DNA of 64,000 nt, from the sequence record ON000910.1. One strand, written 5' to 3'. Below are positions 2,389 to 19,873 of the stretch, piece after piece; the stretch's first letter is position 1; every line of letters starts with the position of its first letter. Under the pieces are notes generated by a model. It was not told the origin of the DNA. It did no database searches and saw only the letters and a list, made by a program, of their open reading frames with translations. The position numbers and the translations under genes are program-made.

Positions 2389-2655
2389 ATGTCACAACAA
2401 ACTGCTGAACAAGTAATCGAACAGAAAGACGCACAAATCAAAGATCTTAAAGTGCGTACCTTTGACCTACAAGAGACTCTTCAAGAAGAGCGCAATTCTT
2501 TTGGTCAGTTCGTGGGTGTACTAGCTCAACTACTCGATTTCGATCAGACGCAAGCAAGTTCTCTACAGAACTACGTTGACGAAATCGCAATTCTAACCGG
2601 TAAAGCTGAACGTCCTGCTGAAGGCGACGGCGAACAAGAAAAAGACGCTGAATAA
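2389..2655 (+). CDS. 57A: Tail fibre assembly chaperone gp57A
   Basis: Small acidic coiled-coil protein between gene 1 and 57B, as in T4. Confidence 0.7.
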   Translation: MSQQTAEQVIEQKDAQIKDLKVRTFDLQETLQEERNSFGQFVGVLAQLLDFDQTQASSLQNYVDEIAILTGKAERPAEGDGEQEKDAE

Positions 2656-3110
2656 TGAAACTATCTAAGTTCCTTGAAAGTCAGGGAACTTACGTTGGTA
2701 TCAGATTAGACGAGGCGAGTAAGCAAGAGTTAGTTCGATTGCAGAAAACGCTTCGTCTAAAAAATCCGTTAGAACCAGATAAATTTCACGTGACTGTGCT
2801 TTATAGTCGTAAGCAAATTGATGTACCTGTTGTCGATACCACTTTCGTTGCTACTGTTGAACATATCGACTGTTGGAAAACGCAAGACGGCAAATATGCA
2901 GTTGTTGCTAAGATGGTATGTCCAGAACTTGTAGAACGTCACGATGATCTTATCTCTATCGGTGGTACTCACGACTACCCTGACTATACCCCTCACGTTA
3001 CGTTGTCTTATGACGACGCGATCACACCTATGTCCGTCAACGCTGAAGTTCGGCTTGTTGATGAATATCTTGAACCACTTGATTTAAATTGGGTTGATAG
3101 TAATGACTGA
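2655..3110 (+). CDS. acb1: 2H phosphoesterase gp57B / anti-CBASS nuclease Acb1
   Basis: Two HxT motifs (FHVTVLYSR, PHVTLSY), W.TQDG, G.THDY.DYTPH and EY.EPL.L.W as in T4 57B. Confidence 0.88.
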   Translation: MKLSKFLESQGTYVGIRLDEASKQELVRLQKTLRLKNPLEPDKFHVTVLYSRKQIDVPVVDTTFVATVEHIDCWKTQDGKYAVVAKMVCPELVERHDDLISIGGTHDYPDYTPHVTLSYDDAITPMSVNAEVRLVDEYLEPLDLNWVDSND

Positions 3111-3357
3111 TTTATCTACTGAAGCAGTATTAAAGAAGTACAATGAAGCTCCCGAAACTCTAACTACTGAAGAGAACGTTGTATTATTGACGTATATCAT
3201 CGGTATGCAGACCGATCAGATTGCTTTACTTAAAGAGAACAACAAACTTTACGATAAAGCTATCACTGAGCTTCAGCAAGCTGTATCTCAGCTTCAAATC
3301 AAGCACGCTGCGCTTGAACGAGGTGAGACAGAAAGCGGTATCATTCTTTCAGTATAA
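3103..3357 (+). CDS. Hypothetical coiled-coil protein
   Basis: ORF overlapping the 57B stop. Confidence 0.65.
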   Translation: MTDLSTEAVLKKYNEAPETLTTEENVVLLTYIIGMQTDQIALLKENNKLYDKAITELQQAVSQLQIKHAALERGETESGIILSV

Positions 3358-3365
3358 AAACTCTC

Positions 3366-3402
3366 AAAAAGTTGTTGACTTATTCTGAAAAGCATGTAGA
3401 AT
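3366..3402 (+). promoter_or_regulatory. Early (sigma70-like) promoter
   Basis: A-tract, TTGACT (3375), TG-TAGAAT (3397). Confidence 0.7.
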
Positions 3403-3458
3403 GTATTTCATCGAGTCGAGAGACAGAACACAAACTTTCAACTCGATGAAATATTTGA

Positions 3459-3495
3459 AAAAAGTTGTTGACTTACACTGAAATGATGTTAAGAT
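3459..3495 (+). promoter_or_regulatory. Early promoter driving the ncRNA/tRNA cluster
   Basis: AAAAAAGTTGTTGACT (same upstream block as 3366) ... TAAGAT; start site expected near 3502. Confidence 0.65.
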
Positions 3496-3503
3496 TAACA
3501 CAG

Positions 3504-3612
3504 TTGATTAAGCGAGCTAAGTTCATCGTTCTCGCCTCTTATTGAAGATGAACAATATTGATTAAGCAGACTAAACTCATCGTTTCTGCCTCTTCTCTGA
3601 AGATGAGTAATA
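3504..3612 (+). ncRNA. Two tandem 54/55-nt H-type pseudoknot repeats
   Basis: Unit 1: S1 GCGAG/CTCGC, S2 GTTCATC/GATGAAC. Unit 2: S1 GCAGA/TCTGC, S2 ACTCATC/GATGAGT. Compensatory changes with conserved linkers. Confidence 0.75.
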
Positions 3613-3760
3613 TTTTAAATGTGCGTTAGCCGCAATGAATACATGGAGCCAGTATACGTTCTGGCGTGCAGGGATACTCTTAGCGGACGAATTCTCAATC
3701 AAAAAACTAGCTGAGTTAAAATTCGCTCAGTCGGCGTGCAAGTAGCGCACATTTAAAATA
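3613..3760 (+). ncRNA. ~145-nt structured RNA with long terminal stem and a variant GCAA motif
   Basis: TATTTTAAATGTGCG / CGCACATTTAAAATA terminal stem; internal hairpins GCCAG/CTGGC and CTGAG/CTCAG; GTGCGT-TA-GCCGCAA ... GCGCAC. Confidence 0.6.
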
Positions 3761-3776
3761 TCGAGAGTACATTGGT

Positions 3777-3899
3777 CGAGTGTTGGTGTAGTGGCAGCAC
3801 ACGTAGCATACTGTAATCAGGCATGATTATATTCAGCAACCAATTTACGCATATCATAGGGAGATCGTGGGAACGGTTCGATTCCGTTACACTCGACCA
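3777..3899 (+). ncRNA. tRNA chimera 1: Pro-like scaffold (C1-G72, loop ATAGGGA) with 49-nt insert in the anticodon stem
   Basis: Acceptor CGAGTGT/ACACTCG-ACCA, D arm, T arm AACGG-TTCGATT-CCGTT; insert 3804-3852 contains GTAATC-AG..GATTAT-AT-TCAGCAA. Confidence 0.8.
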
Positions 3900-3932
3900 A
3901 TGTACTCTCACTTATCAAGCGAGGTGAACAAT

Positions 3933-4082
3933 TTGATTGTATATCTTCTCGCACTAGTATTCATCGTCCTCTTTGCCTTGGACATTGAAGAAGAAAAGGT
4001 GCGCATTCATACTTTTGCGCTAATCATATGCGAACGGGTCATTCATCCCGTAAATAAAGCGCACGATTTCAGGTTGTGTTGA
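3933..4082 (+). CDS. Small putative membrane peptide (TTG start)
   Basis: GAGGTG SD 6 nt upstream; hydrophobic N-terminus IVYLLALVFIVLFAL. Confidence 0.4.
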   Translation: MIVYLLALVFIVLFALDIEEEKVRIHTFALIICERVIHPVNKAHDFRLC

Positions 4083-4156
4083 TTAGCTAAGGCAAAATAA
4101 ACTAGAGAATTTTTGGTGCTTGTGATTAACCACAAGCACTCTCAAGAACATATTGA

Positions 4157-4281
4157 GCAGGGTTGGTGTAGTGGCTAGCACACGTAGCATAAACGCAAGC
4201 TGTTAAGTTTGTATTCTGCAATCAATTTAGCATATCATTTCCAAGATCGTGACGCAGGTTCGAATCCTGCACCCTGCTCAA
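4157..4281 (+). ncRNA. tRNA chimera 2: Gly-like scaffold (G1-C72, U73, TTCCAA loop, 3' CAA) with 49-nt insert
   Basis: GCAGGGT/ACCCTGC, T arm GCAGG-TTCGAAT-CCTGC; insert 4185-4233 contains GCAAGC-TG-TTA-A-GTTTGT-AT-TCTGCAA. Confidence 0.8.
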
Positions 4282-4289
4282 TATGTTTT

Positions 4290-4396
4290 TACTACTTTGC
4301 CAACGAGAAAAATAATTTTCGCGGGGTGTTGGTTAAAAGGTTCGAATCCTTGGTTAGGTAGCGTTTCGACGCCCTGACAAGCGAAACAAAGTAGTA
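4290..4396 (+). ncRNA. Multibranch RNA with a T-loop hairpin
   Basis: TACTACTTTG/CAAAGTAGTA closing stem; AAGG-TTCGAAT-CCTT; CCAAC/GTTGG and GTTAGG/CCTGAC stems. Confidence 0.55.
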
Positions 4397-4403
4397 ATAT
4401 AAT

Positions 4404-4521
4404 GGTGAAGTTAGTTCAGTAGGTTAGAACGCCGGCCAAAAAAAACGAAGTCTGATAAGATTTCATTCTGCATTCACATGCACGCCGGAGGTCGCAGGTT
4501 CGAGTCCTGCACTTCACCTTC
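4404..4521 (+). ncRNA. tRNA chimera 3: Asp-like scaffold with insert in the anticodon loop, no encoded CCA
   Basis: GTTC-AGTAGGTTA-GAAC D arm, CCGGC/GCCGG stem, T arm GCAGG-TTCGAGT-CCTGC; insert contains GAAGTC-TG-ATA-A-GATTTC-AT-TCTGCAT. Confidence 0.78.
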
Positions 4522-4528
4522 AAATTCT

Positions 4529-4653
4529 GGAGAGTTAGCTCAGTCTGGTAGAGCAAAAGAATGTTAAAGAATACTGACAAGCATTCATGCTGCAAACCTT
4601 AATAACTAGGTAAATCTTTTTGTCACGTGGTTCAAATCCCGTACTCTCCACCA
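4529..4653 (+). ncRNA. tRNA chimera 4: scaffold with AAAGA/TCTTT anticodon stem enclosing a 54-nt expanded loop
   Basis: GGAGAGT/ACTCTCC-ACCA, GCTC/GAGC D arm, TTCAAAT T loop; insert contains GAATAC-TG-ACA-A-GCATTC-AT-GCTGCAA. Confidence 0.78.
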
Positions 4654-4667
4654 ATTTTCGAGGGTTT

Positions 4668-5036
4668 ATGAATAAGTTTAATGACATTAATGACGAACTT
4701 GATTGTATATTGCATCGTTGTGAGATTGTAAAGCGCAATCTTCGAAAATATTGTACATTTGCTGTTGAAATGCAGTATAGACTTATGATAAACTTCATTG
4801 GCATGGGTTGCTATCAACAAGTTCTGCCGATATTAGACAATCTAAATTATCACCCTGATACAAGTCAGTTTGATAATATTGAGATTATGCAAACTATAAA
4901 AGAATTGATGAAATGTGCAGATAAGCTCGATGAGCTACATCAACAAGACGCTTTTCATCAAATTAAATCGACTGCTCGTATTACAGAAGAAGCAAACATC
5001 TTCGCTGCGAAAGTTGGTCGATTTCTGGAGAAATGA
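4668..5036 (+). CDS. Hypothetical protein
   Basis: GAGG SD before ATG 4668; the longer track start lies inside a tRNA-like RNA. Confidence 0.65.
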   Translation: MNKFNDINDELDCILHRCEIVKRNLRKYCTFAVEMQYRLMINFIGMGCYQQVLPILDNLNYHPDTSQFDNIEIMQTIKELMKCADKLDELHQQDAFHQIKSTARITEEANIFAAKVGRFLEK

Positions 5037-5037
5037 T

Positions 5038-5115
5038 GGCCCTATAGCTCAACACGGTTAGAGCAACCGACTCATAATCGGTAGGTTACAGGTTCGAGTC
5101 CTGTTGGGGTCACCA
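5038..5115 (+). tRNA. tRNA-CAT (elongator Met or Ile2)
   Basis: Full cloverleaf, loop CTCATAA, ACCA end. Confidence 0.9.
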
Positions 5116-5194
5116 AAAATAAATTGAAAAAGTTGTTGACAGACGTTTCATCAACGTGTAGTATACACATTATCAACTACACGAGGAAAACATT

Positions 5195-5425
5195 ATGTCA
5201 CATAAATTGCTAGTTATCACATCAATGCACGGTTGCTACGTCGATTACGATTTCAGAACTGAAATGTTTGACAGATACATGTGTGATGTTGTGATTCCGA
5301 ACGACTCTGTTGTTTTGTACTCGGGTACAGTTTCAATAGATGAAATTCAAGCAGTTGCGAACGAATGTTACGCTGACATCAAGATTGAAGAAGTCAGTGA
5401 TGATGTTTTTGACAGCTATCTTTAA
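5195..5425 (+). CDS. Hypothetical early protein
   Basis: Upstream TTGACA...TAGTAT promoter and GAGG SD. Confidence 0.7.
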   Translation: MSHKLLVITSMHGCYVDYDFRTEMFDRYMCDVVIPNDSVVLYSGTVSIDEIQAVANECYADIKIEEVSDDVFDSYL

Positions 5426-5429
5426 AAAT

Positions 5430-5669
5430 GCCGCTAACTGGCGTACAATACACAGTGTATTCCCAACATTAGTGCAGACGTAGGCTCGCAACCTACGTTG
5501 GTACCGAATCACTGGGACCGAGTAGAAAGTGCATGTGAGATGTCGAAGTCTTGTATGTAGAAATAACGCTCGGCTGCTCTGAAATGCTGATTAGCTCTTA
5601 CTTCGAAACTCTAATTGGGTGGAAGAGGTGTTGTGTTTGACGTGTGTTCGATTCACACGAGCGGCGCCA
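5430..5669 (+). ncRNA. 240-nt tRNA-like RNA with tmRNA-type architecture
   Basis: GCCGCT/AGCGGC-GCCA acceptor, CGTGTG-TTCGATT-CACACG T arm, AACTGG D-like loop, ACAATAC/GTGTTGT helix enclosing ~175 nt. Confidence 0.65.
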
Positions 5670-5682
5670 AGAGGAAATTATA

Positions 5683-6207
5683 ATGAAACCATTGAAGTTC
5701 GTTGAAGCGTTCTCTAAAGAAGAACGTGCTGCTATGACGATTGAAGAACGTAGCAGACTTCGTAAAATATATAACGAACGCTATCAAGAGTATGTTGATA
5801 AGTACATCAATGTATTCACTCGAAAAGACTTTCGAAGAGAGCGTTGCTGGGTTATTCTTGCACGATGTAAAAAGACTGGTGAAATCATCGGTCGAATTGA
5901 AAATAGTTTTAGTATGGGATGGTCTAAAGAACGTGTTCGTGTTATTCGACCGTATCTAAACGGTAATTTCACGGGCGATGATCGCTTCTCTAAAGCTGAG
6001 TACAACAAAGCGTGTGCTGAGTACATAACTCATCATGAGAAACAAGTAAAGTCTCTCAGAGAAGCTTACAAAGACACTCACGACGTTTTCTTATCTCGTG
6101 TGGGTAGTAAGAACTGTCCTGTTTCTATTGATTGGGATACGTATTACAATAAAAAAGACAAACGAAACTTTGAATATCGAAATTTGAAGTTCAAAACGAA
6201 ATCATAA
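5683..6207 (+). CDS. Hypothetical basic protein
   Basis: GAGG SD, ATG 5683; the track start lies within the T arm of the ncRNA. Confidence 0.7.
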   Translation: MKPLKFVEAFSKEERAAMTIEERSRLRKIYNERYQEYVDKYINVFTRKDFRRERCWVILARCKKTGEIIGRIENSFSMGWSKERVRVIRPYLNGNFTGDDRFSKAEYNKACAEYITHHEKQVKSLREAYKDTHDVFLSRVGSKNCPVSIDWDTYYNKKDKRNFEYRNLKFKTKS

Positions 6208-6238
6208 ATACTTTCTTTTAGAGTTTAGAGGAAGAAGT

Positions 6239-6535
6239 ATGAAAACGTTTGGTGAATTCCTAATTGAATTTGGTGGCGGCGGATTTCAATCTGGCGCTGC
6301 TGATGACAGTAGATTTTTAGAAGAACTTGTTCGCAGGTTGCAGAAGAAGCAAGTTCAAATTAGTAAGAAAACTGATTCTGTGAATTGGGGTCATGGTAAA
6401 ATCACGGTTAGAGATGGGAAAGTTCGTTATATTACGAAATATGATGGCCCGCGTGATTTCAAAGAGTTTAGTAGTACACGTGAATTCATGGATGCGTTCA
6501 TGAAAGGTGACTACACTCAATTGCAAGACAAATAA
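6239..6535 (+). CDS. Putative internal head protein
   Basis: N-terminus MKTFGEFLIE resembles the T4 capsid-targeting sequence; late promoter CATAAATA at 6203. Confidence 0.6.
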   Translation: MKTFGEFLIEFGGGGFQSGAADDSRFLEELVRRLQKKQVQISKKTDSVNWGHGKITVRDGKVRYITKYDGPRDFKEFSSTREFMDAFMKGDYTQLQDK

Positions 6536-6540
6536 TTTAT

Positions 6541-6656
6541 AGTCGGGTAGCTCAGTGGTAGAGCACGAAGAATGATACTGACAAGTATCGCTCCAGCACT
6601 CCTTCAATTGCCTGTTAAGCACGTGGTCGCTGGTTCGAATCCAGCCCCGACTACCA
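6541..6656 (+). ncRNA. tRNA chimera 5: Asn(GTT) scaffold with 41-nt insert in the anticodon stem
   Basis: Removing 6568-6608 gives CGTGC-CTGTTAA-GCACG and a 75-nt cloverleaf with ACCA; insert contains TGATAC-TG-ACA-A-GTATCG-CT-CCAGCAC. Confidence 0.82.
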
Positions 6657-6682
6657 TTTTTGATAAACTAGTGAGGTATAAC

Positions 6683-6919
6683 ATGAGCGGAACATTTAAT
6701 ATCAACAAAACGTTACTGACTCCGAAACAATTGCGCAATCTAACAGATGAGCGTCTAAATGAATATCGCAAGTCGTTTCGTAAGCCTCTTGGTTTTTTGA
6801 AGCATCTGAACGATACAAACGAATTGACTTCAGATCAACACAAGAAATTCGTTGAGCTTAATAAGCACTATAACGACGAAATCCTTGTTGAAATGAACAA
6901 GCGAAAACACTTAGGTTAA
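6683..6919 (+). CDS. Hypothetical protein
   Basis: GAGG SD before ATG 6683. Confidence 0.65.
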   Translation: MSGTFNINKTLLTPKQLRNLTDERLNEYRKSFRKPLGFLKHLNDTNELTSDQHKKFVELNKHYNDEILVEMNKRKHLG

Positions 6920-7187
6920 TAAAATCGCAGAAAGTTGAAATTTTTTTCAATTTTCTGCGAAAATATCGCAAATCGTCAGATTTAGTGTTATAAGTACTAT
7001 AAAGAAACAAAACAAATTTTAATTTTTATTTCAAGAGAGCATTCAATGACGCATTCGTTTACACATTCATCTGAGACATTACGCAGCGATTTTCTGCGCT
7101 CAGAATTCGTGTATCTAGCGAATCCGATTGCGAACCAGAAGTGGGATACCCTCTTGTAGTCCGATAGTATAACATAGAAGTATACTT

Positions 7188-7212
7188 GAGGACGCAAATA
7201 GCGTCCTTTTTT
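7188..7212 (+). terminator. Rho-independent terminator
   Basis: GGACGC-AAATA-GCGTCC followed by T7. Confidence 0.8.
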
Positions 7213-7290
7213 TATGGGCGCAATAAAAGTCAAAAATTTTGTTTAACGTACTTTGATTACAGAGTATGATAAACAAAGTTAAAGAACAAA

Positions 7291-7364
7291 CGGGACGTGG
7301 CGTAAAGGTAGCGTTCATGCTTTGGGAGCATGTGGTAAGAGTTCGAGTCTCTTCGTCCCGACCA
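7291..7364 (+). tRNA. tRNA-Pro(TGG)
   Basis: Cloverleaf, loop TTTGGGA, ACCA. Confidence 0.9.
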
Positions 7365-7373
7365 ATTTAAAAT

Positions 7374-7450
7374 CCGTGACTAGCTCAATCTGGTAGAGTA
7401 CTCCGTTTGGGGCGGAGAAGTTAAGCGTTCGAATCGCTTGTCACGGACCA
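7374..7450 (+). tRNA. tRNA-Pro(TGG)
   Basis: Cloverleaf, loop TTTGGGG, ACCA. Confidence 0.9.
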
Positions 7451-7458
7451 GTTTTAAT

Positions 7459-7534
7459 GCCCGATTAGCTCAATTGGAAGAGCAGCGTCCTACGAAGGCG
7501 AAGGTTACAAGTTCGAATCTTGTATTGGGTGCCA
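7459..7534 (+). tRNA. tRNA-Arg(ACG)
   Basis: Cloverleaf, loop CTACGAA, GCCA. Confidence 0.9.
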
Positions 7535-7740
7535 GTTAGTGTTGTTTGATTGAAGCTCGTTTTCGCACATTCCCGAAACTGCTTCTACGATTTGATACGC
7601 TTAGGACCGTATCTCGTTAAGTACTGTCGAGATGATAGAATTTAGCGAACTTTTTCATAAATTAGTGTTTATGATGTCTTGAGCGAGTGTTAATATTAAC
7701 ACATAGAAAATGAAAACGTTAAGTTCTTCAAAATAAATTC

Positions 7741-7868
7741 AAAAAGATGTTTACAATGACGAAAACATCATGTACAATAGAGAAAAGCGAAATATCATTC
7801 AAAGCTGAATGAAAAGTTTTTCAAAAAAAGATGTTTACAACGATATAAACATCATGTACAATAGAGAA
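7741..7868 (+). promoter_or_regulatory. Two tandem near-identical T4-type early promoters
   Basis: AAAAAGATGTTTACAA-N-AAACATCATGTACAATAGAGAA at ~7741 and ~7826 (GTTTAC -35, TACAAT -10). Confidence 0.8.
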
Positions 7869-7872
7869 GAAC

Positions 7873-8091
7873 ATGAATGACATAATTAAAGATGTGTCAA
7901 AGTTGACACTGAAAGAAAACGAACGTGTAGTGTTTAGAGTTGATGTCGGTGATTTACCAGCATCGAAAGCTAATCAGTATATACAAAATTTAGTCGATTT
8001 ATTGAAAGAAGCGGGAATTACTAACTCAATTGTTATTCCGTCATCAATAGAAATTTCCGTAATCGATGAAAACGAATTAATGCGCAAGTAG
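7873..8091 (+). CDS. Small protein resembling a segment of T4-type portal (VDVGDLPASKANQY)
   Basis: ORF behind tandem early promoters; similarity to recalled portal motif FYIDVGNLP..KA.QY. Confidence 0.55.
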   Translation: MNDIIKDVSKLTLKENERVVFRVDVGDLPASKANQYIQNLVDLLKEAGITNSIVIPSSIEISVIDENELMRK

Positions 8092-8159
8092 CCCAATCTG
8101 GCAGAGGCACTGGTCTTAGAAACCAGAAGTTAAGAGTTCGAATCTCTTCTTGCGTACCA
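8082..8159 (+). tRNA. tRNA-Leu(TAG), short variable loop
   Basis: Loop CTTAGAA, 5-nt variable region, ACCA. Confidence 0.85.
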
Positions 8160-8160
8160 T

Positions 8161-8235
8161 GCACCCTTAGCTTATCAGGAAAAGCGGCGGATTGAAGTCC
8201 CGCAGTGCTCGGTTCGATTCCGAGGGGGTGCACCA
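8161..8235 (+). tRNA. tRNA-Phe(GAA)
   Basis: Cloverleaf, loop TTGAAGT, one anticodon-stem mismatch, ACCA. Confidence 0.8.
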
Positions 8236-8323
8236 TATTATAGCTTGTTTGTAAGAGTTAAATCAAGCAAGGGATTTTAGTTTTGAGTTATTTAGCAAAC
8301 GCTCTTAACGTGAAAATCAAATT

Positions 8324-8398
8324 GGGTCGTTAGTATAACGGTAGTACATCTGGCTTTTAACCAGAAGGGTGAGAGTTCGAATCTCTTGCGACCCACCA
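8324..8398 (+). tRNA. tRNA-Lys(TTT)
   Basis: Loop CTTTTAA, ACCA. Confidence 0.9.
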
Positions 8399-8409
8399 GT
8401 TTTTATAAT

Positions 8410-8486
8410 GCGTCGGTAGCTCATCATGGAAGAGCAGGGAGCTTTTAACTCTCAGGTGTCTGGTTCGAGTCCAGAGCGGCGTACCA
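8410..8486 (+). tRNA. tRNA-Lys(TTT)
   Basis: Loop CTTTTAA, ACCA; G7-G66 mismatch. Confidence 0.85.
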
Positions 8487-8549
8487 AATTAGATACATTG
8501 TGTATCGCTTTGCAAGTTAGATAGCTTGCAAATCAATATACAATTTAAT

Positions 8550-8624
8550 TCTCCCGTGGACTAACGGTAGGTCATCACCCTTTCAAGGTGAAGTGCGCGA
8601 GTTCGAATCTCGTCGGGAGAACCA
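8550..8624 (+). tRNA. tRNA-Glu(TTC)
   Basis: Loop CTTTCAA, ACCA. Confidence 0.88.
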
Positions 8625-8630
8625 TATTCT

Positions 8631-8716
8631 GGAGCGTACGTCTCAAGGTGAGACAGGGGACTGTAAATCCCTGACCCTTAACGGGTAGAGAGGTTCGATT
8701 CCTCTACGCTCCACCA
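8631..8716 (+). tRNA. tRNA-Tyr(GTA)
   Basis: Loop CTGTAAA, long variable arm, ACCA. Confidence 0.9.
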
Positions 8717-8721
8717 GTTTT

Positions 8722-8809
8722 AGCTTGCATACTGCAATTTAACTTAATCTATTGATCGCTCGGCGGGCATTGCTCAGACAGCGATAAACAGACCAAAGAA
8801 CGCAAGCTG
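8722..8809 (+). ncRNA. Stand-alone GCAA-motif RNA
   Basis: A-GCTTGC-AT-ACTGCAA ... GCAAGC-TG. Confidence 0.7.
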
Positions 8810-8818
8810 TTGAATAAT

Positions 8819-8895
8819 TGCGGAGTAGAGCAGCGGTCAGCTCGCCAGTTTCATAAGCTGGAGGTCAGTGGTTCGAATCCACTCTCACGCATCCA
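8819..8895 (+). tRNA. tRNA-Met(CAT), initiator-like D arm, irregular acceptor stem
   Basis: GAGC/GCTC D stem, loop TTCATAA, extra A in 3' acceptor strand, TCCA; lacks the GGG/CCC pairs of fMet. Confidence 0.7.
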
Positions 8896-8902
8896 AACAA
8901 AT

Positions 8903-9001
8903 GGAAGGCTTAGCCGAAAGATTCTGGGTAGCGGCAACGGTCTTGAAAACCGTCGGTCACCGGGAGGTGATGTTAGGGTTCGAATCCCTAGTCTTCCGCC
9001 A
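8903..9001 (+). tRNA. tRNA-Ser(TGA)
   Basis: Loop CTTGAAA, long variable arm, GCCA; enlarged D loop. Confidence 0.88.
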
Positions 9002-9064
9002 ATTAGTTAACCGGGAAGTTTAGTCACTTAACCGATTAACAGTGCGCTGAAATGCGCACACTTT

Positions 9065-9138
9065 AGTCCCTTAGCTCAACGGTAGAGCGTGCGACCGATA
9101 ATCGCTTGGTAAGAGTTCGATTCTCTTAGGGACTACCA
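9065..9138 (+). tRNA. tRNA-Ile(GAT)
   Basis: Loop CCGATAA (C33), ACCA. Confidence 0.85.
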
Positions 9139-9144
9139 AATTTT

Positions 9145-9218
9145 AGGGGCATGATGTAAAGGCAGCATGACGGATTCCAAACCCGTTCGTTAGAGTTCGA
9201 ATCTCTATGCCCCTGCCA
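9145..9218 (+). tRNA. tRNA-Trp(CCA)
   Basis: Loop TTCCAAA, GCCA. Confidence 0.88.
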
Positions 9219-9223
9219 GTTTA

Positions 9224-9282
9224 AGTAATCTTACAGCAAACAATACAAAACTTTTATTTGGAAAAAGCAAAAAGGATTACTG
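9224..9282 (+). ncRNA. Minimal GCAA-motif RNA
   Basis: A-GTAATC-TT-ACAGCAA ... GATTAC-TG with an A-rich loop. Confidence 0.7.
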
Positions 9283-9292
9283 TTTAAATTTA

Positions 9293-9368
9293 GGATCGCT
9301 AACTCAATGGTTAGAGTGCTCGCCTGTTAAGCGAGGAGTTCCGAGTTCGAGTCTCGGGCGGTCCGCCA
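9293..9368 (+). tRNA. tRNA-Asn(GTT)
   Basis: Loop CTGTTAA, GCCA. Confidence 0.92.
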
Positions 9369-9438
9369 AATTCGGAGAGTCACTACCGTTAAGTGTGAAC
9401 TTGAAAAAAACAAAGCAACTACTTTAAGTTGTCTTTGG

Positions 9439-9514
9439 GGAGCCGAGGTGTAAAAGGTTGCATGTCTCCCTGTCACGGAGAAGGTAGCGGGTTCGAAACC
9501 CGTCGGTTCCGCCA
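9439..9514 (+). tRNA. tRNA-Asp(GTC)
   Basis: Loop CTGTCAC, GCCA. Confidence 0.9.
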
Positions 9515-9533
9515 AAGATAATTTAAGAACAAT

Positions 9534-9607
9534 TGGGGATTGGTGTAAAGGCAGCATAACGTACTTTGAATGCGTTGGTATCAGTTCGAATCTGTTATCC
9601 CCAGCCA
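9534..9607 (+). tRNA. tRNA-Gln(TTG)
   Basis: Loop CTTTGAA, T1-A72, GCCA. Confidence 0.9.
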
Positions 9608-9615
9608 AATACCAT

Positions 9616-9732
9616 AGAGTGTTTTCAGCAAACAATTTACTAATATTCTTCTGATGAAAAGAAAAGTTCGGGGTTCGATTCCTCTTCAGTGTCGGTATCA
9701 CTGGTCTGGACGACGCTAGTAATAACACTCAG
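9616..9732 (+). ncRNA. GCAA-motif RNA enclosing a T-loop module (YrlA-like layout)
   Basis: A-GAGTGT-TT-TCAGCAA ... ACACTC-AG; internal GGGG-TTCGATT-CCTC and CAGTG/CACTG hairpins. Confidence 0.72.
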
Positions 9733-9736
9733 TTAC

Positions 9737-9811
9737 GCTCCTGAAGCATTGATGGCGATGCAGCGGTCTTGTAAACCGCAGAATTCGGTTCGATTCCGAA
9801 CGGGAGCACCA
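9737..9811 (+). tRNA. tRNA-Thr(TGT)
   Basis: Loop CTTGTAA, ACCA. Confidence 0.9.
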
Positions 9812-9836
9812 TATTGATTAGAGAGTGTTATCATGA

Positions 9837-9844
9837 TATAAATA
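9837..9844 (+). promoter_or_regulatory. T4-type late promoter
   Basis: TATAAATA upstream of 9875. Confidence 0.8.
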
Positions 9845-9874
9845 TTCATGTAACTACATTTTAGAGGTAATAAC

Positions 9875-10150
9875 ATGTCTATTAAAACATTTTCTGAATA
9901 TCTTAACGAAGCAAAGCATCGTGGGTCTGGCGTAGACACTCATGACGGGAAGATTCCGTATGTATACGCTGACAGTAAAGACGCTGCTGCATTTGCTGAT
10001 TTCGTATCGTCAATAGGTATGAAGCTTGATTCGAACGGTGAATTGAAGCTTTCTACACGAGATAAAGTACGAAAGTTCTTCTCAGAGCTTGATCAAGAAG
10101 CAACTAATTTCATGCTTCATGGCAACTTTGATATTATTGAATATATGTAA
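9875..10150 (+). CDS. Putative internal head protein
   Basis: MSIKTFSEYLNE capsid-targeting-like N-terminus; late promoter; GAGG SD. Confidence 0.62.
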   Translation: MSIKTFSEYLNEAKHRGSGVDTHDGKIPYVYADSKDAAAFADFVSSIGMKLDSNGELKLSTRDKVRKFFSELDQEATNFMLHGNFDIIEYM

Positions 10151-10165
10151 AAATTGGTGATTGTA

Positions 10166-10375
10166 ATGGTATATATTTCTGTATGGTGTGAATATGACAT
10201 TGGTGGGGATTTCGGTGGCAACAATAACGAAGATGTTTTTTCCGTTAGTGAAGAATTATCTAATGAAGAAGTTGAAGCAAAAGTTGCTGAATATATTTCT
10301 GACATTGTTGGTGAGCCGATTGAAGAACTTGAAGGTTTATACGGTTGGGAATATATTTCAATCACACAGTTGTAA
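10166..10375 (+). CDS. Hypothetical acidic protein
   Basis: ORF with GGTGA SD. Confidence 0.6.
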   Translation: MVYISVWCEYDIGGDFGGNNNEDVFSVSEELSNEEVEAKVAEYISDIVGEPIEELEGLYGWEYISITQL

Positions 10376-10382
10376 AAAATAT

Positions 10383-10457
10383 GGGCCGTTAGCTTAATTG
10401 GGAAAGCGCCTCACTTGCAATGAGGAAGATAGGGTTCGACTCCCTGCGTGTCCACCA
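10383..10457 (+). tRNA. tRNA-Ala(TGC), irregular acceptor stem
   Basis: Loop CTTGCAA, G3-U70, ACCA. Confidence 0.8.
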
Positions 10458-10531
10458 AATTTCGAACACATGAGCGTAGACTCTCTTTACTACCATCGTC
10501 TACACTAGCTCATGGTTCGAAACTTTTCAAT

Positions 10532-10607
10532 GCGCTGTTAGCTCAATTGGAAGAGCACGTCCCTTCTAAGGATGGGGTTATGAGTTCGAATCTCATACGG
10601 CGTGCCA
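10532..10607 (+). tRNA. tRNA-Arg(TCT)
   Basis: Loop CTTCTAA, GCCA. Confidence 0.92.
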
Positions 10608-10670
10608 TATTAAGCTCTTATCATGTGACGAATGATACTTTGCTTCGGCATATCACGAGCATGGTGAGAG

Positions 10671-10787
10671 AGACAATATACAGCAAACAATTGAAATTAC
10701 TTAAAAGAAGTGATGATCTTAACCTGGGCTGATTTTAACCTGAGCTTGCTTGGGCGCAGCTTGAAAGGAAAGATTCTCTCTGTCTAG
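10671..10787 (+). ncRNA. GCAA-motif RNA
   Basis: A-GACAAT-AT-ACAGCAAACAATT ... TGTC-TAG (4 of 6 bp). Confidence 0.6.
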
Positions 10788-10789
10788 AA

Positions 10790-11127
10790 ATAGTCAGATA
10801 GGCGCGTCGCTGAAACAGACGATATTTGCTTATTGAGAATCAATAAGCTAGTCAACTCCGATTTATGCAAAAGACGAAAAAACACTTCGGTATTGTCTGT
10901 ACTTAATTCGTCGGAAACGACACTGTAGCCGAAAGGCAAGTTTACTAACTTAGTTGTTAGTCGTGATACAGGAAGTATCATGTGGCATTATTATGAACGT
11001 TTCTAGTCATCGTCATGTAAAACAATCAAAACTAAGCAGAGGTAACAGTACCCACTATGTGGTTCCTCACTCAGACCATGAATATATGGTGTCAGCCAGT
11101 GTGCGATTAAATGAGTAATTACTGCAA
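10790..11127 (+). ncRNA. Candidate ~340-nt structured RNA with GAAA tetraloops, ending in a permuted GCAA motif
   Basis: GTCG-GAAA-CGAC, GCC-GAAA-GGC, GCTTATTG/CAATAAGC, TGATAC/GTATCA; TCACTC-AG ... GAGTAA-TT-ACTGCAA. Confidence 0.5.
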
Positions 11128-11129
11128 TT

Positions 11130-11205
11130 GGTGACGTAGCTCAAGTGGCAGAGCCACGCTTTCATACGGCGTAAGATCCGATTTCGAGTATCGGTGTCAC
11201 CTCCA
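11130..11205 (+). tRNA. tRNA-Met(CAT)
   Basis: Loop TTCATAC, TCCA end. Confidence 0.82.
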
Positions 11206-11230
11206 AATTCAAACAAAGAGGTTAAGAAGC

Positions 11231-11388
11231 ATGACTACTTTACACTAAGCAAGGGCAACATACGCGATAAGATTCGCTGTGTTGAAAATCGTCTCGCAGA
11301 AGAGACCAACCCGTTCTTTATAAGAACACTTACTGTAGAGCTTACGAATCTACGTGCAATACGTGATTTGTTCGACGCTTCAGATTAA
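11231..11388 (+). pseudogene. Frameshifted small ORF
   Basis: SD AGAGG and ATG ACT ACT TTA CAC TAA; inserting one T joins it to the open frame TLSKGNIRDK...DASD*. Confidence 0.45.
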
Positions 11389-11392
11389 CAAT

Positions 11393-11466
11393 GCGGGTAT
11401 GATGTAATGGTAGCATGACGTCCTTCCAAGTCGTTCGTCTCGGTTCGAGTCCGTGTACCCGCTCCA
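11393..11466 (+). tRNA. tRNA-Gly(TCC)
   Basis: Loop CTTCCAA, U73, TCCA. Confidence 0.9.
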
Positions 11467-11472
11467 AATTTT

Positions 11473-11546
11473 GGTCCCTTAGTATAATGGCAGTACGTCT
11501 CTTTTACACAGAGAAAGAAGTGGCTCGATTCCACTAGGGACTACCA
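11473..11546 (+). tRNA. tRNA-Val(TAC)
   Basis: Loop TTTACAC, T loop CTCGATT (C54), ACCA. Confidence 0.85.
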
Positions 11547-11569
11547 TTCTTTATGATGAGAAATAAATT

Positions 11570-11809
11570 ATGACGCCTGCATTACTTGAAACTCATGAAT
11601 ACGTAAACCACAACCAAATCGAAAAGCTACAGCAAATGGACAGACTTATGTTTGATTGTTGGCGTGCTGGGTATAAACGTGGCAAGATTTTAGAGCTTGC
11701 ATTGTCGATTGAGTCTTCAACAACCGAAGCAGACATCGAAATTTATTTCAAAAATATGTTTACAAGAGAACTATCGGCTGATAGTATCTACTTAAAGAAA
11801 ACTGTATGA
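11570..11809 (+). CDS. Hypothetical protein
   Basis: ORF between tRNAs with GAG SD. Confidence 0.6.
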   Translation: MTPALLETHEYVNHNQIEKLQQMDRLMFDCWRAGYKRGKILELALSIESSTTEADIEIYFKNMFTRELSADSIYLKKTV

Positions 11810-11961
11810 CGGAGTAGTGCTCCGACCGAATGACACACGCAAATGAGTCCGGTTGACAAACGTTATATGTCCCAAAGTATTGCAGGTAGCGACGGCGGTG
11901 TTGCTAGTAGATTTATCTATTTCTCCAAGACATAATGCAAGCTTTTAAAGTGTACTTTGGT

Positions 11962-12038
11962 GTGGCAGTGGGTGAAGTGGAAATACCCCCGGGTTGTGAT
12001 TCCGGAAGATGCGGGTTCGATCCCCGTCTGTCACCCCA
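11962..12038 (+). tRNA. tRNA-His(GTG)
   Basis: Loop TTGTGAT, C73, CCA; encoded -1 base is T, not G. Confidence 0.85.
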
Positions 12039-12050
12039 AAGTACATTTAT

Positions 12051-12124
12051 GCTCGAATCGTATAATGGCAGTATGACGGATTGCAAATCCGCAGGTCAGG
12101 GTTCGATTCCCTGTTCGAGCTCCA
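12051..12124 (+). tRNA. tRNA-Cys(GCA)
   Basis: Loop TTGCAAA, U73, TCCA. Confidence 0.9.
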
Positions 12125-12332
12125 GAAAAGACGATGCACAAGTTGGATGTGCAAAGGGGTCGGTTATGGTTCAACGCTTTATGCGTATAGGGTTAATCGC
12201 CTAGAACTGAGCATGTTTGAGTTGCTACTCACGAATGTAGTGATGAGTGCGTAAGAAGCCCGTAGCTAGTATAATGAGTTGATAACTCGGCAGCCTAGCA
12301 GTGTCGCCAACATCGACATAACGACACATAAT

Positions 12333-12409
12333 GCGCACGTGGTCCAATTGGCAGAGGCATGAGGCTTAAAATCTCAGGGATGGCGGTTCGAATCCGCCCG
12401 TGCGTACCA
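12333..12409 (+). tRNA. tRNA-Leu(TAA), short variable loop
   Basis: Loop CTTAAAA, 5-nt variable region, ACCA. Confidence 0.85.
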
Positions 12410-12524
12410 AATTCTAGCATAAGCCGCATTCTAACGAAGCTAGACTACCGCCGTTGAAAAACGGTCTCAGCCGAGCGAAAGCTGACAGGCGTTAGGGATT
12501 AAAGAGTTGCGGCAGCTTATTCAA

Positions 12525-12601
12525 GCCCAACTAGTCCAATTGGCAGAGGCGCTAGTTTCAAACACTAGATGATCCGAGTTCGAATCTCGGGTTGGGCACC
12601 A
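12525..12601 (+). tRNA. tRNA-Leu(CAA), short variable loop
   Basis: Loop TTCAAAC, 5-nt variable region, ACCA. Confidence 0.85.
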
Positions 12602-12697
12602 AATTCACTTAGCAACGCGAATCGAAAGAGAGTGGATAGACCTGCTAAGAGTCCCGCTAGGTCTTTAAATTATCTAAAGTGGATCTGCGAAGCGCGT

Positions 12698-12732
12698 GGC
12701 ACACGTCAGCAATAAGAGCAAATATGTGTCTG
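12698..12732 (+). ncRNA. Minimal GCAA-motif hairpin
   Basis: GGCACA-CG-TCAGCAA ... TGTGTC-TG. Confidence 0.6.
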
Positions 12733-12769
12733 AGCATGAGAGCAGCATGCCACTAATTGATGAGACGTT

Positions 12770-12858
12770 GGAAGCATGGTCTAAAGGTATGACAGCACCC
12801 TGCTAAGGTGTCGGACGTTAATAGCGTTCTCTGGGTTCGACTCCCAGTGCTTCCGCCA
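12770..12858 (+). tRNA. tRNA-Ser(GCT)
   Basis: Loop CTGCTAA, long variable arm, GCCA. Confidence 0.9.
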
Positions 12859-18301: not shown

Positions 18302-18394
18302 AAAAAAAGTGTTTACACGCATTAAAATTCGCGTATAATCACTTCATCAAAGACATTTTACAGCAATTAATTATGAGGAAATGAACAATGTCAG
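18302..18394 (+). promoter_or_regulatory. Early promoter plus GCAA-motif leader enclosing SD and AUG of the Ro60-like gene
   Basis: GTTTAC (18311)-17 bp-TATAAT (18334); A-GACATT-TT-ACAGCAA-TTAATT-ATGAGGAAATGAAC-AATGTC-AG, with ATG 18388 inside the 3' strand. Confidence 0.8.
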
Positions 18395-19824
18395 TATTTA
18401 TGAACGCAATGCAAACAAACGATTCACGCACAGCAAACGGTGCAGTTACTCACAGCACTTCAGGTAACGAGTGTCTAAACTTGTTCTTCGGTATTGCTGC
18501 TATGCGTGGCAACGATCAGTCTAAAACACTGTTCGGTCGTGCGTTTGCAGAAAACCCAGAACTAGCGACACGCATTCTTTTGTGGTCTCGTGATGTTCGC
18601 GGTGGTGCGGGTGAACGTGGTACTTTCCGTACTCTATTCACTAAACTTTGTAATGAACAGCCTGACGTAGCTCGTGCTGTAATGTCGAAAATTCCAGAAC
18701 TAGGTCGTTACGATGACTTAATTTCTGCTTTCGGTACACGTCTTGAACAAGATGCGATCACAATGTGGTCGAACGCAATTGTCAATGACAAGAATGGTCT
18801 TGCTGCGAAGTGGTTCCCACGTGAAAACAGCAAAAACGGTCATGTGTTCAAGCGCACAATCAAGTCTCTTGGCGTGACTGCGAAGCAGTGGCGTAAGATT
18901 CTGTCGCTTCTGTCTGACACTGTTGAGCAGAAGATGTGTGCGCAAAAATGGGATGCAATCGACTTCGGTAAGTTGCCTTCTGTAGCGTCTGCTCGTTATC
19001 AACAAGCATTCGGTCGTAACGCTTCAGCTCGTTACACAAGCTACATCGAGTCACTTCAAAAAGGTGAAGCGAAGATCAACGCTGGCGCATTGTTCCCATA
19101 CGATGTCGTTAAGAGCGTTAGTCACGGTAATGCGTCTGTAGCGAACGAGCAATGGAAAGCTCTGCCAAACTACATGGAAGGTTCTGATGAGCGCATCATC
19201 CCTGTTGTTGACGTGTCTGGCTCTATGAGCACGCCAATCAACGCAGGTACTGATCATTCAGGTGTGACTTGTAAGCAAGTTGCAATGTCTCTGGGTGTAT
19301 ATGTTGCTGAACGCAACGAAGGCATCTTCAAAGATCAATTCATTTCGTTCTCAAGCGACCCGCACTTCCACCAGTTGCGCGGTAGCTCATTGAAAGAGCG
19401 TCTTGATAACATGAATCGTTCAGGCGAAGACATGAGTACGAACATCGGTAAGTGCTTTGATGTTCTGCTAGAGCGTGCGAAGCGTGCAAATCTTTCACAA
19501 GAAGATATGCCAACCAAGTTGCTTATCATGAGTGACATGGAATTCGATCAAGCAAACACTGGTGGTGGTTGGTACGGTCGCGGTGAACCTGCGAACTTCG
19601 ATGCAATCAAAGCCAAGTACGCACGTGCTGGTTATGAAATGCCACAACTGGTCTTCTGGAACATTCGTGGTCGTCTTGGCAACGTTCCGGTTAAAGCTGG
19701 TGAAGCGGGTACTGCACTGGTATCTGGTTGTAGCCCATCTATCTTGACTTCACTGTTGGGTGGTGAGCTTGAGCCAATCAAGATCATGATGAAAACTGTA
19801 GGCGTCGAACGCTACAGCTTTTAA
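18388..19824 (+). CDS. DUF2828 family TROVE/Ro60-like protein with C-terminal vWA (MIDAS) domain
   Basis: T.NGA..HSTSG, RDVRGG.GER..FR, AAKW.PRE, KINAGALFPYD, PVVDVSGSM, SDMEFD, P.LVFWN motifs. Confidence 0.85.
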   Translation: MSVFMNAMQTNDSRTANGAVTHSTSGNECLNLFFGIAAMRGNDQSKTLFGRAFAENPELATRILLWSRDVRGGAGERGTFRTLFTKLCNEQPDVARAVMSKIPELGRYDDLISAFGTRLEQDAITMWSNAIVNDKNGLAAKWFPRENSKNGHVFKRTIKSLGVTAKQWRKILSLLSDTVEQKMCAQKWDAIDFGKLPSVASARYQQAFGRNASARYTSYIESLQKGEAKINAGALFPYDVVKSVSHGNASVANEQWKALPNYMEGSDERIIPVVDVSGSMSTPINAGTDHSGVTCKQVAMSLGVYVAERNEGIFKDQFISFSSDPHFHQLRGSSLKERLDNMNRSGEDMSTNIGKCFDVLLERAKRANLSQEDMPTKLLIMSDMEFDQANTGGGWYGRGEPANFDAIKAKYARAGYEMPQLVFWNIRGRLGNVPVKAGEAGTALVSGCSPSILTSLLGGELEPIKIMMKTVGVERYSF

Positions 19825-19873
19825 ATAAGTGATAAGGGCGGCATTGTGCTGCCCTTTTTTGTAAGAGGTGAAA

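Follow-up and report, generated by a model that had tools for sequence, protein, structure and literature searches.

The window analysed here, a stretch of 64,000 nucleotides from sequence record ON000910.1, holds at the head of a phage tRNA region a group of RNA genes in which a tRNA-like body is interrupted in its anticodon arm. The question raised by this locus is whether such chimeric RNAs are tRNA genes carrying introns or non-coding RNAs of another kind. An initial annotation, made from the sequence, had counted three of them and offered two readings, a protein-dependent splicing/ligation switch or a three-way junction displaying both an anticodon hairpin and a protein-binding stem. The three are real, but the count was too low: a covariance model (CM) built from 28 sequences, for which matches of at least 52 bits over more than 100 nt were taken as high-scoring, gives exactly five matches in the window (C1 to C5 below). 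The evidence set out here points to tRNA mimics that probably serve a phage Ro60-like protein.

The window belongs to a KVP40-like Vibrio phage. Over bases 3300-7000 its identity is 100% with Vibrio phage XZ1, 99.5% with ValKK3 and 87.5% with KVP40; these relatives are T4-like phages of the genus Schizotequatrovirus. The five chimeras and their parts are as follows.

3763-3910, + strand: C1, a Pro-like tRNA body (3777-3899) with the pair C1-G72, A73 and CCA, within a leader/trailer helix of about 20 bp; CM score 98 bits
3804-3852, + strand: insert of C1, 49 nt, at tRNA positions 28/29, with hairpin 3813-3830 and motif ATTCAGCA at 3831-3838
3853-3867, + strand: retained anticodon hairpin of C1, ATC-ATAGGGA-GATCG, the final two bases of which pair with CG at 3802-3803
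4147-4290, + strand: C2, a tRNA-like body (4157-4278) in a 17-bp terminal helix, CCA unencoded; CM score 105.7 bits
4185-4233, + strand: insert of C2, 49 nt, at 28/29, with hairpin 4195-4212 (loop TGTTAA) and motif ATTCTGCA at 4213-4220
4234-4249, + strand: anticodon hairpin of C2, directly after the insert, with an 8-nt loop
4405-4518, + strand: C3, a tRNA body whose unsplit 5-bp anticodon stem encloses a 46-nt loop with the module inside; CM score 69.8 bits
4447-4464 and 4465-4472, + strand: module of C3 within the 46-nt loop, a hairpin (loop TGATAA) and the motif ATTCTGCA, respectively
4529-4653, + strand: C4, an Asn-like body with A73 and CCA; CM score 64.2 bits
4568-4614, + strand: insert of C4, 47 nt, after position 38, with hairpin 4569-4586 (loop TGACAA) and motif ATGCTGCA at 4587-4594
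6541-6656, + strand: C5, an Asn-like body with A73 and CCA, 100% identical in KVP40; CM score 97.8 bits
6568-6608, + strand: insert of C5, 41 nt, at 28/29, with hairpin 6573-6590 (loop TGACAA) and motif CTCCAGCA at 6591-6598
6609-6623, + strand: anticodon hairpin of C5, after the insert

Conventional tools recover these genes poorly. A canonical tRNA is a 72-90-nt cloverleaf found by tRNA finders, and none of the five is one: ARAGORN, run on the uncut window, called none of them. The Rfam tRNA model gave three overlong matches (4405-4518, 4529-4650 and 6541-6653, corresponding to C3, C4 and C5), which it fits end to end only with insertions of 46-54 nt, and C1 and C2 score under its gathering threshold. 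Across the region, at gathering thresholds and at E values up to 5, the tRNA model was the only Rfam family to match, with no ribozyme, intron, tmRNA or credible YrlA. The KVP40 record labels the orthologues of C3, C4 and C5 as tRNA-Pseudo-5, tRNA-Pseudo-4 and tRNA-Pseudo-3, in line with the low-scoring pseudo-tRNAs described for the KVP40 and phi-pp2 annotations (PMC3468402), while the phi-Grn1 record lists five 'tRNAs' of 113-122 nt bearing arbitrary anticodons.

Restored anticodon stems

The restored split anticodon stems are real and precisely placed. All five chimeras share U8, A14, G18-G19, A21 and GGTTCGA, their D- and T-stems covary, and CCA is encoded in C1, C4 and C5. In C1, C2 and C5 the first two anticodon-stem bases, CG, come straight after position 26 and the insert follows; beyond it stand three more stem bases and a loop of 7 or 8 nt, after which a strand of 5 nt forms a perfect helix with the 2+3 bases. 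The placement of the inserts after the second base of the 5' anticodon strand, as originally described, was thus confirmed base by base in these three RNAs. The excisions proposed in the initial annotation also reproduce. Removal of 3804-3852 leaves a perfect stem, and ARAGORN, given the script-joined flanks, reports tRNA-Pro(agg) with C1-G72 and G37. Removal of 4185-4233 (after CG at 4183-4184) leaves ATC-ATTTCCAA-GATCG, called as a tRNA with an 8-nt ttcc loop, and removal of 6568-6608 (after CG at 6566-6567) leaves TGC-CTGTTAA-GCACG, called as tRNA-Asn(gtt). The sequence likewise agrees with the description of the C1 and C2 inserts as both 49 nt long, starting TAGCATA and ending GCAT. A fourth restored stem, AAAGA-ATGTTAA-TCTTT, appears when 4568-4614 is taken out of C4, where the insert follows position 38.

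Chance was estimated by shuffling anticodon regions in a permissive search that allowed a split after base 1-4, a loop of 7-8 nt and a variable loop of 4-5 nt. A perfect split stem arose in 1.2-1.5% of shuffles per anticodon region, so that a single case alone is weak evidence. Comparison carries more weight. When 28 diverse homologues were aligned and pairs counted on a structure specified by hand, the 2-bp half of the split stem was paired in 96% and the 3-bp half in 92%, and all five of its pairs change on both sides (CGATC, CGTGC, CCTCC, CGAGC, CGGAA, CGTCC, CGGCT, CGGTC and others). The whole structure was 96.7% paired, against about 40% when the partners were slid by 1-3 columns.

At 41-49 nt, against roughly 200 nt or more for the catalytic P3-P9 core of a group I intron, which normally sits in the anticodon loop, the inserts are too short for self-splicing, as had been noted at the outset, and Rfam intron models at E values up to 5 gave zero matches among them.

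A few related observations may be recorded here. Vibrio phage D479 (L010, 5863-7297) carries at least five chimeras, the stems of which differ from those in the window by compensatory changes; one of them has a 9-nt loop. The terminal leader/trailer helices of C1 (20 bp) and C2 (17 bp) covary among orthologues and are absent from C3-C5. RNase III might process the RNAs at these helices, or the helices may belong to the mature RNA; no conserved motif was seen in either of them.

The conserved insert module

Alignments of orthologues from ten related phages reveal one plan in all five RNAs, namely an A-rich linker, a hairpin of 5-6 bp with a 6-nt loop, and then U-N-C-N-G-C-A. The loop reads UGNNAA in four of the five window RNAs and AGGCAU in C1; as a purely structural idea, UGNNAA might form an interdigitated T-loop. 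The invariant U-N-C-N-G-C-A (GCA) ends at a constant distance of 20 nt from the first base of the loop, each of the six hairpin pairs covaries, and most inserts start with UA immediately after CG.

The insert module is kept at least as tightly as the tRNA body. In KVP40, nt-1, QD01 and VS2, C1 is 97-99% and C5 97-100% identical, compared with 85-88% over the surrounding 3.7 kb. In the C1 and C2 orthologues the anticodon loop varies in sequence and length (ATAGGGA or ATTAGGA in the former; ATTTCCAA, ATTCTAA, ATTCATAA or CTTCAAA in the latter) while the motif stays constant. The anticodon itself is unconserved there (AGG versus UAG, in loops of 7 or 8 nt), with GUU kept in C4 and C5. Drift of the C1/C2 loop beside a fixed motif is the opposite of what would be expected for a decoding tRNA with a disposable intron.

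Two further pairings were considered and set aside. A helix proposed by RNAalifold between G28-UAGC and GCAAC after the C1/C2 module hairpin was rejected because its partners are invariant, the pairing is broken in D479 and in IMG/VR homologues, and it competes with the covarying 28-42 pair. A pseudoknot between loop position 3 or 4 and tail position 17, compared by eye, lacked covariation.

Distribution of the RNA class

IMG/VR was scanned with a loose DNA pattern (T-loop, gap, motif and loop letters) followed by a hairpin filter, and 117 loci were fetched. High-scoring members were found in 34 of these, frequently in 2-3 copies per locus; tRNA-like genes interrupted by the module occur in dozens of phage contigs, unrelated and for the most part large. 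Parsed sequence by sequence, the insert mostly follows position 28, and excision restores perfect stems whose sequence varies from family to family. Several types of tRNA body occur, with Pro-, Gly/Glu-, Asn-, Asp- and Thr-like D-arms and loops. Among relatives with the same motif, some lack a D-arm, and several located beside a Ro gene lack a canonical tRNA 5' half. A single-protein query of bacterial genomes yielded 3 loci with zero high-scoring RNAs; the neighbouring gp57B, tried as a handle for related loci, yielded just 4 and was abandoned. Searches of Rfam 15 and the literature returned no description of the insert, the motif or the RNA class.

Genomic association with a Ro60-like protein

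The protein link emerged from clustering all open reading frames (ORFs) in the fetched RNA loci, amongst which one protein of about 470-530 aa stood out. The window encodes a member of this family, 37-49% identical to homologues from module-RNA loci, together with a second gene that recurs near such RNAs.

18388-19824, + strand: Ro60-like protein, 478 aa, an alpha-solenoid ring and a vWA domain with a DxSxS MIDAS motif; Pfam DUF2828 and DUF7788
19868-20398, + strand: YkuK-type RNase H-like protein (PF04308), encoded immediately after the Ro-like gene

A DUF2828/DUF7788 gene lies within the fetched stretch in 14 of the 34 high-scoring loci compared with 2 of the 83 others (Fisher p = 2e-7), and both exceptions hold weaker RNA copies. 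The gene is often within a few hundred nt of a module RNA.

The AlphaFold2 model of the window protein (predicted local distance difference test, pLDDT, 81) was compared with the PDB using Foldseek, and the top 10 matches, which extend over the full length, were all Ro60/TROVE proteins (E values 5e-9 to 3e-6, template modelling scores 0.52-0.61, 508-577 aligned columns), including Xenopus and human Ro60, Deinococcus Rsr and the Ro60 of Thermus phage phiLo. The Pfam TROVE model does not match the protein, DUF2828/DUF7788 matching instead. PHROG 850, to which it belongs, is labelled 'RNA-binding protein', and the MIDAS DxSxS is invariant in 15 homologues. As modelled, the protein would thus possess the HEAT-repeat ring and the vWA domain with MIDAS by which Ro60/TROVE proteins are recognised. 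It is 31-34% identical, over the full length, to mycobacteriophage entries named 'Ro-like RNA binding protein', and the family occurs in at least 711 deposited phage genomes, amongst them Felix O1-like, Listeria, Staphylococcus, Campylobacter, mycobacterial and T4-like phages.

The initial annotation had pointed to a neighbouring YkuK gene as a possible factor. That gene exists and matches PF04308, but the best predictor of the RNAs is the Ro60-like protein, which had gone unnamed. Seven loci that are otherwise unrelated (L087, L115, L154, L180, L198, L199 and L211) also have a YkuK-type gene close to the Ro-like gene or to module RNAs, and it is present in only 5 of the 80 loci described next; it is a recurrent, not an obligate, neighbour.

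The association was also tested in reverse, on 80 loci fetched by the Ro-like protein alone. The strict module pattern found one member in this set, while the CM gave tRNA-like matches of 100-148 nt beside the gene in about 16 loci. In nearly all of the RNAs recovered in this way, (U/A)CAGCAA precedes an A-rich run, a small hairpin and a T-arm. A k-mer count that assumed no motif, taken over 6-mers lying 8-75 nt upstream of T-arms outside ARAGORN tRNAs, ranked CAGCAA highest (17 of 73 orphan T-arms versus 3 of 243 normal tRNAs, p = 2e-9), and matches to a loose pattern of motif and T-arm are concentrated no more than 200 nt from the Ro gene, on its strand.

Besides these loci, the CM also gave a long tRNA-like match beside the Ro-like gene in two named phages. 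In FelixO1 an unannotated 130-nt RNA candidate with CAGCAA, a small hairpin and a T-arm (L213:14409-14538, record positions 24526-24655) lies about 1 kb downstream of the Ro-like gene, which itself sits directly upstream of the tRNA array. This element is present in 248 Felix O1-like phage records, 90-100% conserved in most and mostly unannotated; they include Escherichia phage JohannRWettstein, which we take to be Bas63. The Ro-like proteins of felixounaviruses (FelixO1, HY02, Tf and others) are 43-46% identical to that of the window, but the FelixO1 RNA differs from the chimeras in having a degenerate tRNA 5' half and an unsplit small hairpin. In Mycobacterium phage Archie a 132-nt candidate (L214:6475-6606) lies directly downstream of a 'Ro-like RNA binding protein' gene. 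It contains the motif ACAGCAA twice, an Asn-type loop (CUGUUAA) and a T-arm, and is not matched by the Rfam YrlA model.

Comparison with known RNAs

Ro60 proteins of bacteria, and those of some phages, work with tRNA mimics whose genes lie close to the Ro60 gene (PMC4201824; 10.1101/312249), and a phage Ro60 has been found to bind phage-encoded Y-like RNAs (PMC12135203). In jumbo phages TROVE proteins with 'a tRNA-like partner' have been noted (PMC7824862). Bas63 encodes a Ro60-like protein, gp130, directly upstream of its tRNA array; this protein counters the ppl defence, and the authors of that study ventured the guess that Y RNAs are among the adjacent 'tRNA genes' (PMC11482910).

YrlA (RF02553; PMC4201824; 10.1101/312249) offers the closest parallel. 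Like the chimeras it is a modular non-coding RNA of about 100-130 nt, often in several copies near the gene of a Ro60-type ring protein, with a tRNA-like domain, canonical D- and T-arms and a protein-binding module at the position of the anticodon stem; the YrlA of M. smegmatis is cut by RNase P and receives CCA. However, YrlA has a closed acceptor loop, no anticodon loop, and its 5' and 3' ends in the Ro-binding stem, whereas the chimeras have their ends at the acceptor, retain an anticodon hairpin and carry the candidate binding module as a side arm that is closed. This arm bears the motif U-N-C-N-G-C-A(A); the GNCGAAN0-1G of YrlA, located in the stem formed by its ends, is absent from the chimeras. 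The window protein, too, represents a divergent DUF2828/DUF7788 branch that Pfam does not call TROVE. The permuted topology, the different motif and the failure of the Rfam YrlA model exclude the chimeras from YrlA itself.

Yrn1 of D. radiodurans is described with a T-arm and an 'anticodon arm', the latter having a stem of 5 bp and a loop of 6 rather than 7 nt (PMC4201824). The module hairpin of the chimeras (5-6 bp stem, 6-nt loop) resembles that arm, a likeness drawn from the published description only; Yrn1 differs in having a classical bulged Ro-binding helix formed by its two ends.

The stable T4 RNAs rnaC and rnaD (species 1 and 2), which at 139 and 119 nt are similar in size to the chimeras, lie in the same syntenic block (genes 3, 1, 57A and 57B and the tRNA region). 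In rnaC (L015:3909-4047) a T-arm and a hairpin with a 6-nt CGUCAA loop after an A-rich run bear a loose likeness to the module. As candidate members of the class both were rejected, the CM finding no match and U-N-C-N-G-C-A being absent at the fixed spacing. To our knowledge, T4 has no Ro-like gene. Archaeal tRNA introns at non-canonical positions, which proteins splice at a bulge-helix-bulge, are comparable in that inserts of tens of nt may lie in the anticodon stem and their excision restores a cloverleaf. The chimeras differ from them in the lack of a bulge-helix-bulge, in an insert that is highly conserved and not free to vary, and in their bacterial and phage setting, and no splicing endonuclease for the chimeras was identified.

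Interpretation of the chimeric RNAs

The observations on which an interpretation can be built are the structure of the RNAs, its covariation, the breadth of the class and its genomic link to the Ro-like gene. The chimeras are probably stable tRNA mimics akin to Y RNAs, with the insert as the docking arm for the Ro-like protein and the split stem as a three-way junction showing an anticodon hairpin. The five would then be tRNA-shaped non-coding RNAs of about 113-125 nt, the phage counterpart of YrlA-type Y RNAs and not interrupted tRNA genes. Since the acceptor stem, D-arm and T-arm are kept, an L-fold and handling by tRNA-processing enzymes would be expected. The conserved extra arm leaving the anticodon stem may be the docking site for the ring protein encoded at 18388-19824, and the split stem of 2+3 bp, as a three-way junction, could hold this arm at a fixed angle while displaying an anticodon-type hairpin with U33. 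The resulting ribonucleoprotein (RNP) might, like the Ro60-Y RNA particles already known, contribute to RNA surveillance, repair or counter-defence in the infected cell. Between the two readings put forward initially, the three-way junction with a protein-binding stem is favoured because the insert is a conserved module, the class is linked genomically to a Ro60-like protein, and relatives without a D-arm or a tRNA 5' half exist; the splicing/ligation switch is left without positive support.

Several points weigh against this interpretation. Protein binding and the length, stability and biological role of the RNAs are what we infer. In the window the Ro-like gene is on the same strand as the RNAs but 12-15 kb away, with the tRNA array in between (the two are directly adjacent in many other phages), and among the 80 loci fetched by the protein a recognisable member lies within 6 kb in just about 20%. 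The module motif is unlike the known Ro60 sites GNCGAAN0-1G and GGUCCGA (PMC4201824), and the best score of the Rfam YrlA model (RF02553) is 32 bits against a gathering threshold of 69, over the T-arm of C3 and the start of C4. Moreover, tRNA parts are kept beyond the needs of a scaffold: U33 in more than 90%, mostly 7-nt loops, C1-G72 and G37 in C1, CCA in three RNAs and GUU in C4 and C5. Even a mycobacteriophage has the Asn-type loop CUGUUAA. This excess of tRNA conservation suggests recognition by factors selective for certain tRNAs (synthetases, modification enzymes or anticodon nucleases, for example) and goes unexplained by the Ro model alone. It keeps alive a reading as decoys or sensors and, more weakly, one that involves splicing.

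According to the former, the RNAs would be Ro-independent tRNA decoys or sensors that soak up or report host anticodon nucleases or other tRNA-targeting defences, the arm serving stability or another partner. Several body types (Pro-, Gly/Glu-, Asn-, Asp- and Thr-like) do carry the same arm at the same site with matching anticodon-type loops, the RNAs adjoin an anti-CBASS (Acb1) gene and the tRNA array, and very distant phages share the Asn-type loop CUGUUAA. This reading leaves two things without explanation, the strong genomic link to the Ro-like gene and the rank of the arm's single-stranded motif as the most conserved element of all; a Ro-independent role is rather unlikely. It is a partial rival only, being compatible with Ro docking as a downstream role of the RNP. 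Splicing of protein-dependent tRNA introns, in which a module-guided phage or host endonuclease (perhaps with the Ro-like or YkuK proteins) and an RNA ligase would release decoding tRNAs for Pro, a Gly-like species and Asn, must be considered improbable. It agrees with the cloverleaves that ARAGORN accepts after exact excision, with a split stem maintained by compensatory change, with the largely conserved U33 and 7-nt loops, with the Pro-type C1-G72 and G37 of C1, and with the CCA encoded in C1, C4 and C5; T4-type phages also carry an RNA ligase and a polynucleotide kinase. Yet in the C1/C2 orthologues the insert motif is conserved above the anticodon. The restored C2 loop would have 8 nt, C3 of the window would give an unusable CAAAAAA with A33, and C4 and C5 have A73 where the ordinary tRNA-Asn of the phage has G73. 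The amino-acid type of each readable restored anticodon (Pro, Gly and Asn) is already served by a normal phage tRNA, and AGG is an unusual anticodon for Pro in bacteria. Inspection of the junctions showed no bulge-helix-bulge (two 3-nt bulges and a 4-bp helix); the only 4-bp pairings nearby, CGUA/UACG in C1 and GAAG/CUUC in C5, both span the 5' junction, have no equivalent in C2 and are not shared between RNAs. C1 and C2 are moreover locked in leader-trailer helices of 17-20 bp, and in relatives without a D-arm or canonical 5' half, excision of the insert cannot yield a tRNA.

A variant that joins splicing to the Ro link appears more doubtful still. Here the Ro60-like ring would read the arm, a partner nuclease, e.g. 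the YkuK-type protein, would cut the three-way junction and a phage RNA ligase would rejoin the halves, as introns of a new type. If true, the phage could switch on a set of tRNAs (Pro, Gly-like and Asn) during infection; no earlier example of a tRNA splicing system that depends on protein would exist in bacteria or in their viruses, and Ro60 would gain a new function. An invasion of tRNA genes at a preferred site by a small RNA element that is mobile or cleaves itself (an insertion cassette or a new ribozyme) is very unlikely. The identical site of the module in different tRNA bodies, the nearly constant UA right after CG at the start of the insert and the short direct repeats that flank some inserts (GCATA for C1 and C2, TATTAAT for one copy in D479) are as such an element would leave them, but the module also occurs after position 38 and within an intact stem, no Rfam ribozyme matches at E values up to 5, no covarying candidate for a loop/3'-tail pairing was seen, and no endonuclease or transposase accompanies the RNAs in the fetched loci. 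Decay of pseudo-tRNAs with junk insertions, as the low-scoring pseudo-tRNA labels in KVP40 and phi-pp2 (PMC3468402) would have it, is barely credible: the chimeras are conserved above their flanks, which contradicts decay, every helix covaries, and the class recurs in unrelated phages.

Under the preferred interpretation as Ro-docking tRNA mimics, the RNA partners of phage Ro60-like proteins, so far just guessed at, would include a candidate class that is specific and searchable, defined by a tRNA body plus a side arm with U-N-C-N-G-C-A(A) and by defined copies in model phages whose hosts are laboratory strains. The binding and function of phage Ro60 therefore become directly testable. Genes that pipelines label as pseudo-tRNAs or intron-containing tRNAs would be reclassified. 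The chimeras would also provide a natural example of a large domain grafted onto the anticodon stem at 28/29 with the anticodon hairpin retained.

Other features of the region

Directly upstream of the RNA cluster lies one further gene of known type.

2655-3110: gp57B gene, named 57B, or 'RNA ligase' in some records; Pfam Acb1 (anti-CBASS 2H phosphodiesterase), E value 7e-46

As Acb1 is by far its best Pfam match, this would be an anti-defence gene. It was considered as a 2'-5' RNA ligase for splicing and rejected on account of that match; it also occupies the same syntenic position in T4, the fetched tRNA region of which contains no module RNAs according to the CM. The small ORFs among the RNAs (4668-5036, 5195-5425, 5683-6207, 6239-6535 and 6683-6919) match no informative Pfam or PHROG family. 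ARAGORN identified 26 ordinary tRNAs in the window, spanning 5038-12858. Two more matches of ordinary length, at 8820-8891 (55.1 bits) and 10383-10454 (44.9 bits), came from Rfam only.

Three further stretches may hold structured RNAs. Just upstream of C1, 3600-3760 is a candidate of about 160 nt closed by a perfect 16-bp helix, ATATTTTAAATGTGCG ... CGCACATTTAAAATAT, without an Rfam match. In the gap between C2 and C3 (4300-4400) a T-arm-like hairpin, AAGGTTCGAATCCTT, is accompanied by a second hairpin, the loop of which holds CTGACAAG, the letters of the module loop; these may be a degenerate sixth copy of the chimeras. Lastly, a stretch of about 250 nt at 5426-5682, called neither by ARAGORN (as a tmRNA) nor by Rfam, starts with GCCGCT and ends with a T-arm, GTGTGTTCGATTCACAC, followed by AGCGGC-G-CCA, a pattern of acceptor stem, T-arm and CCA around an insert of about 200 nt.

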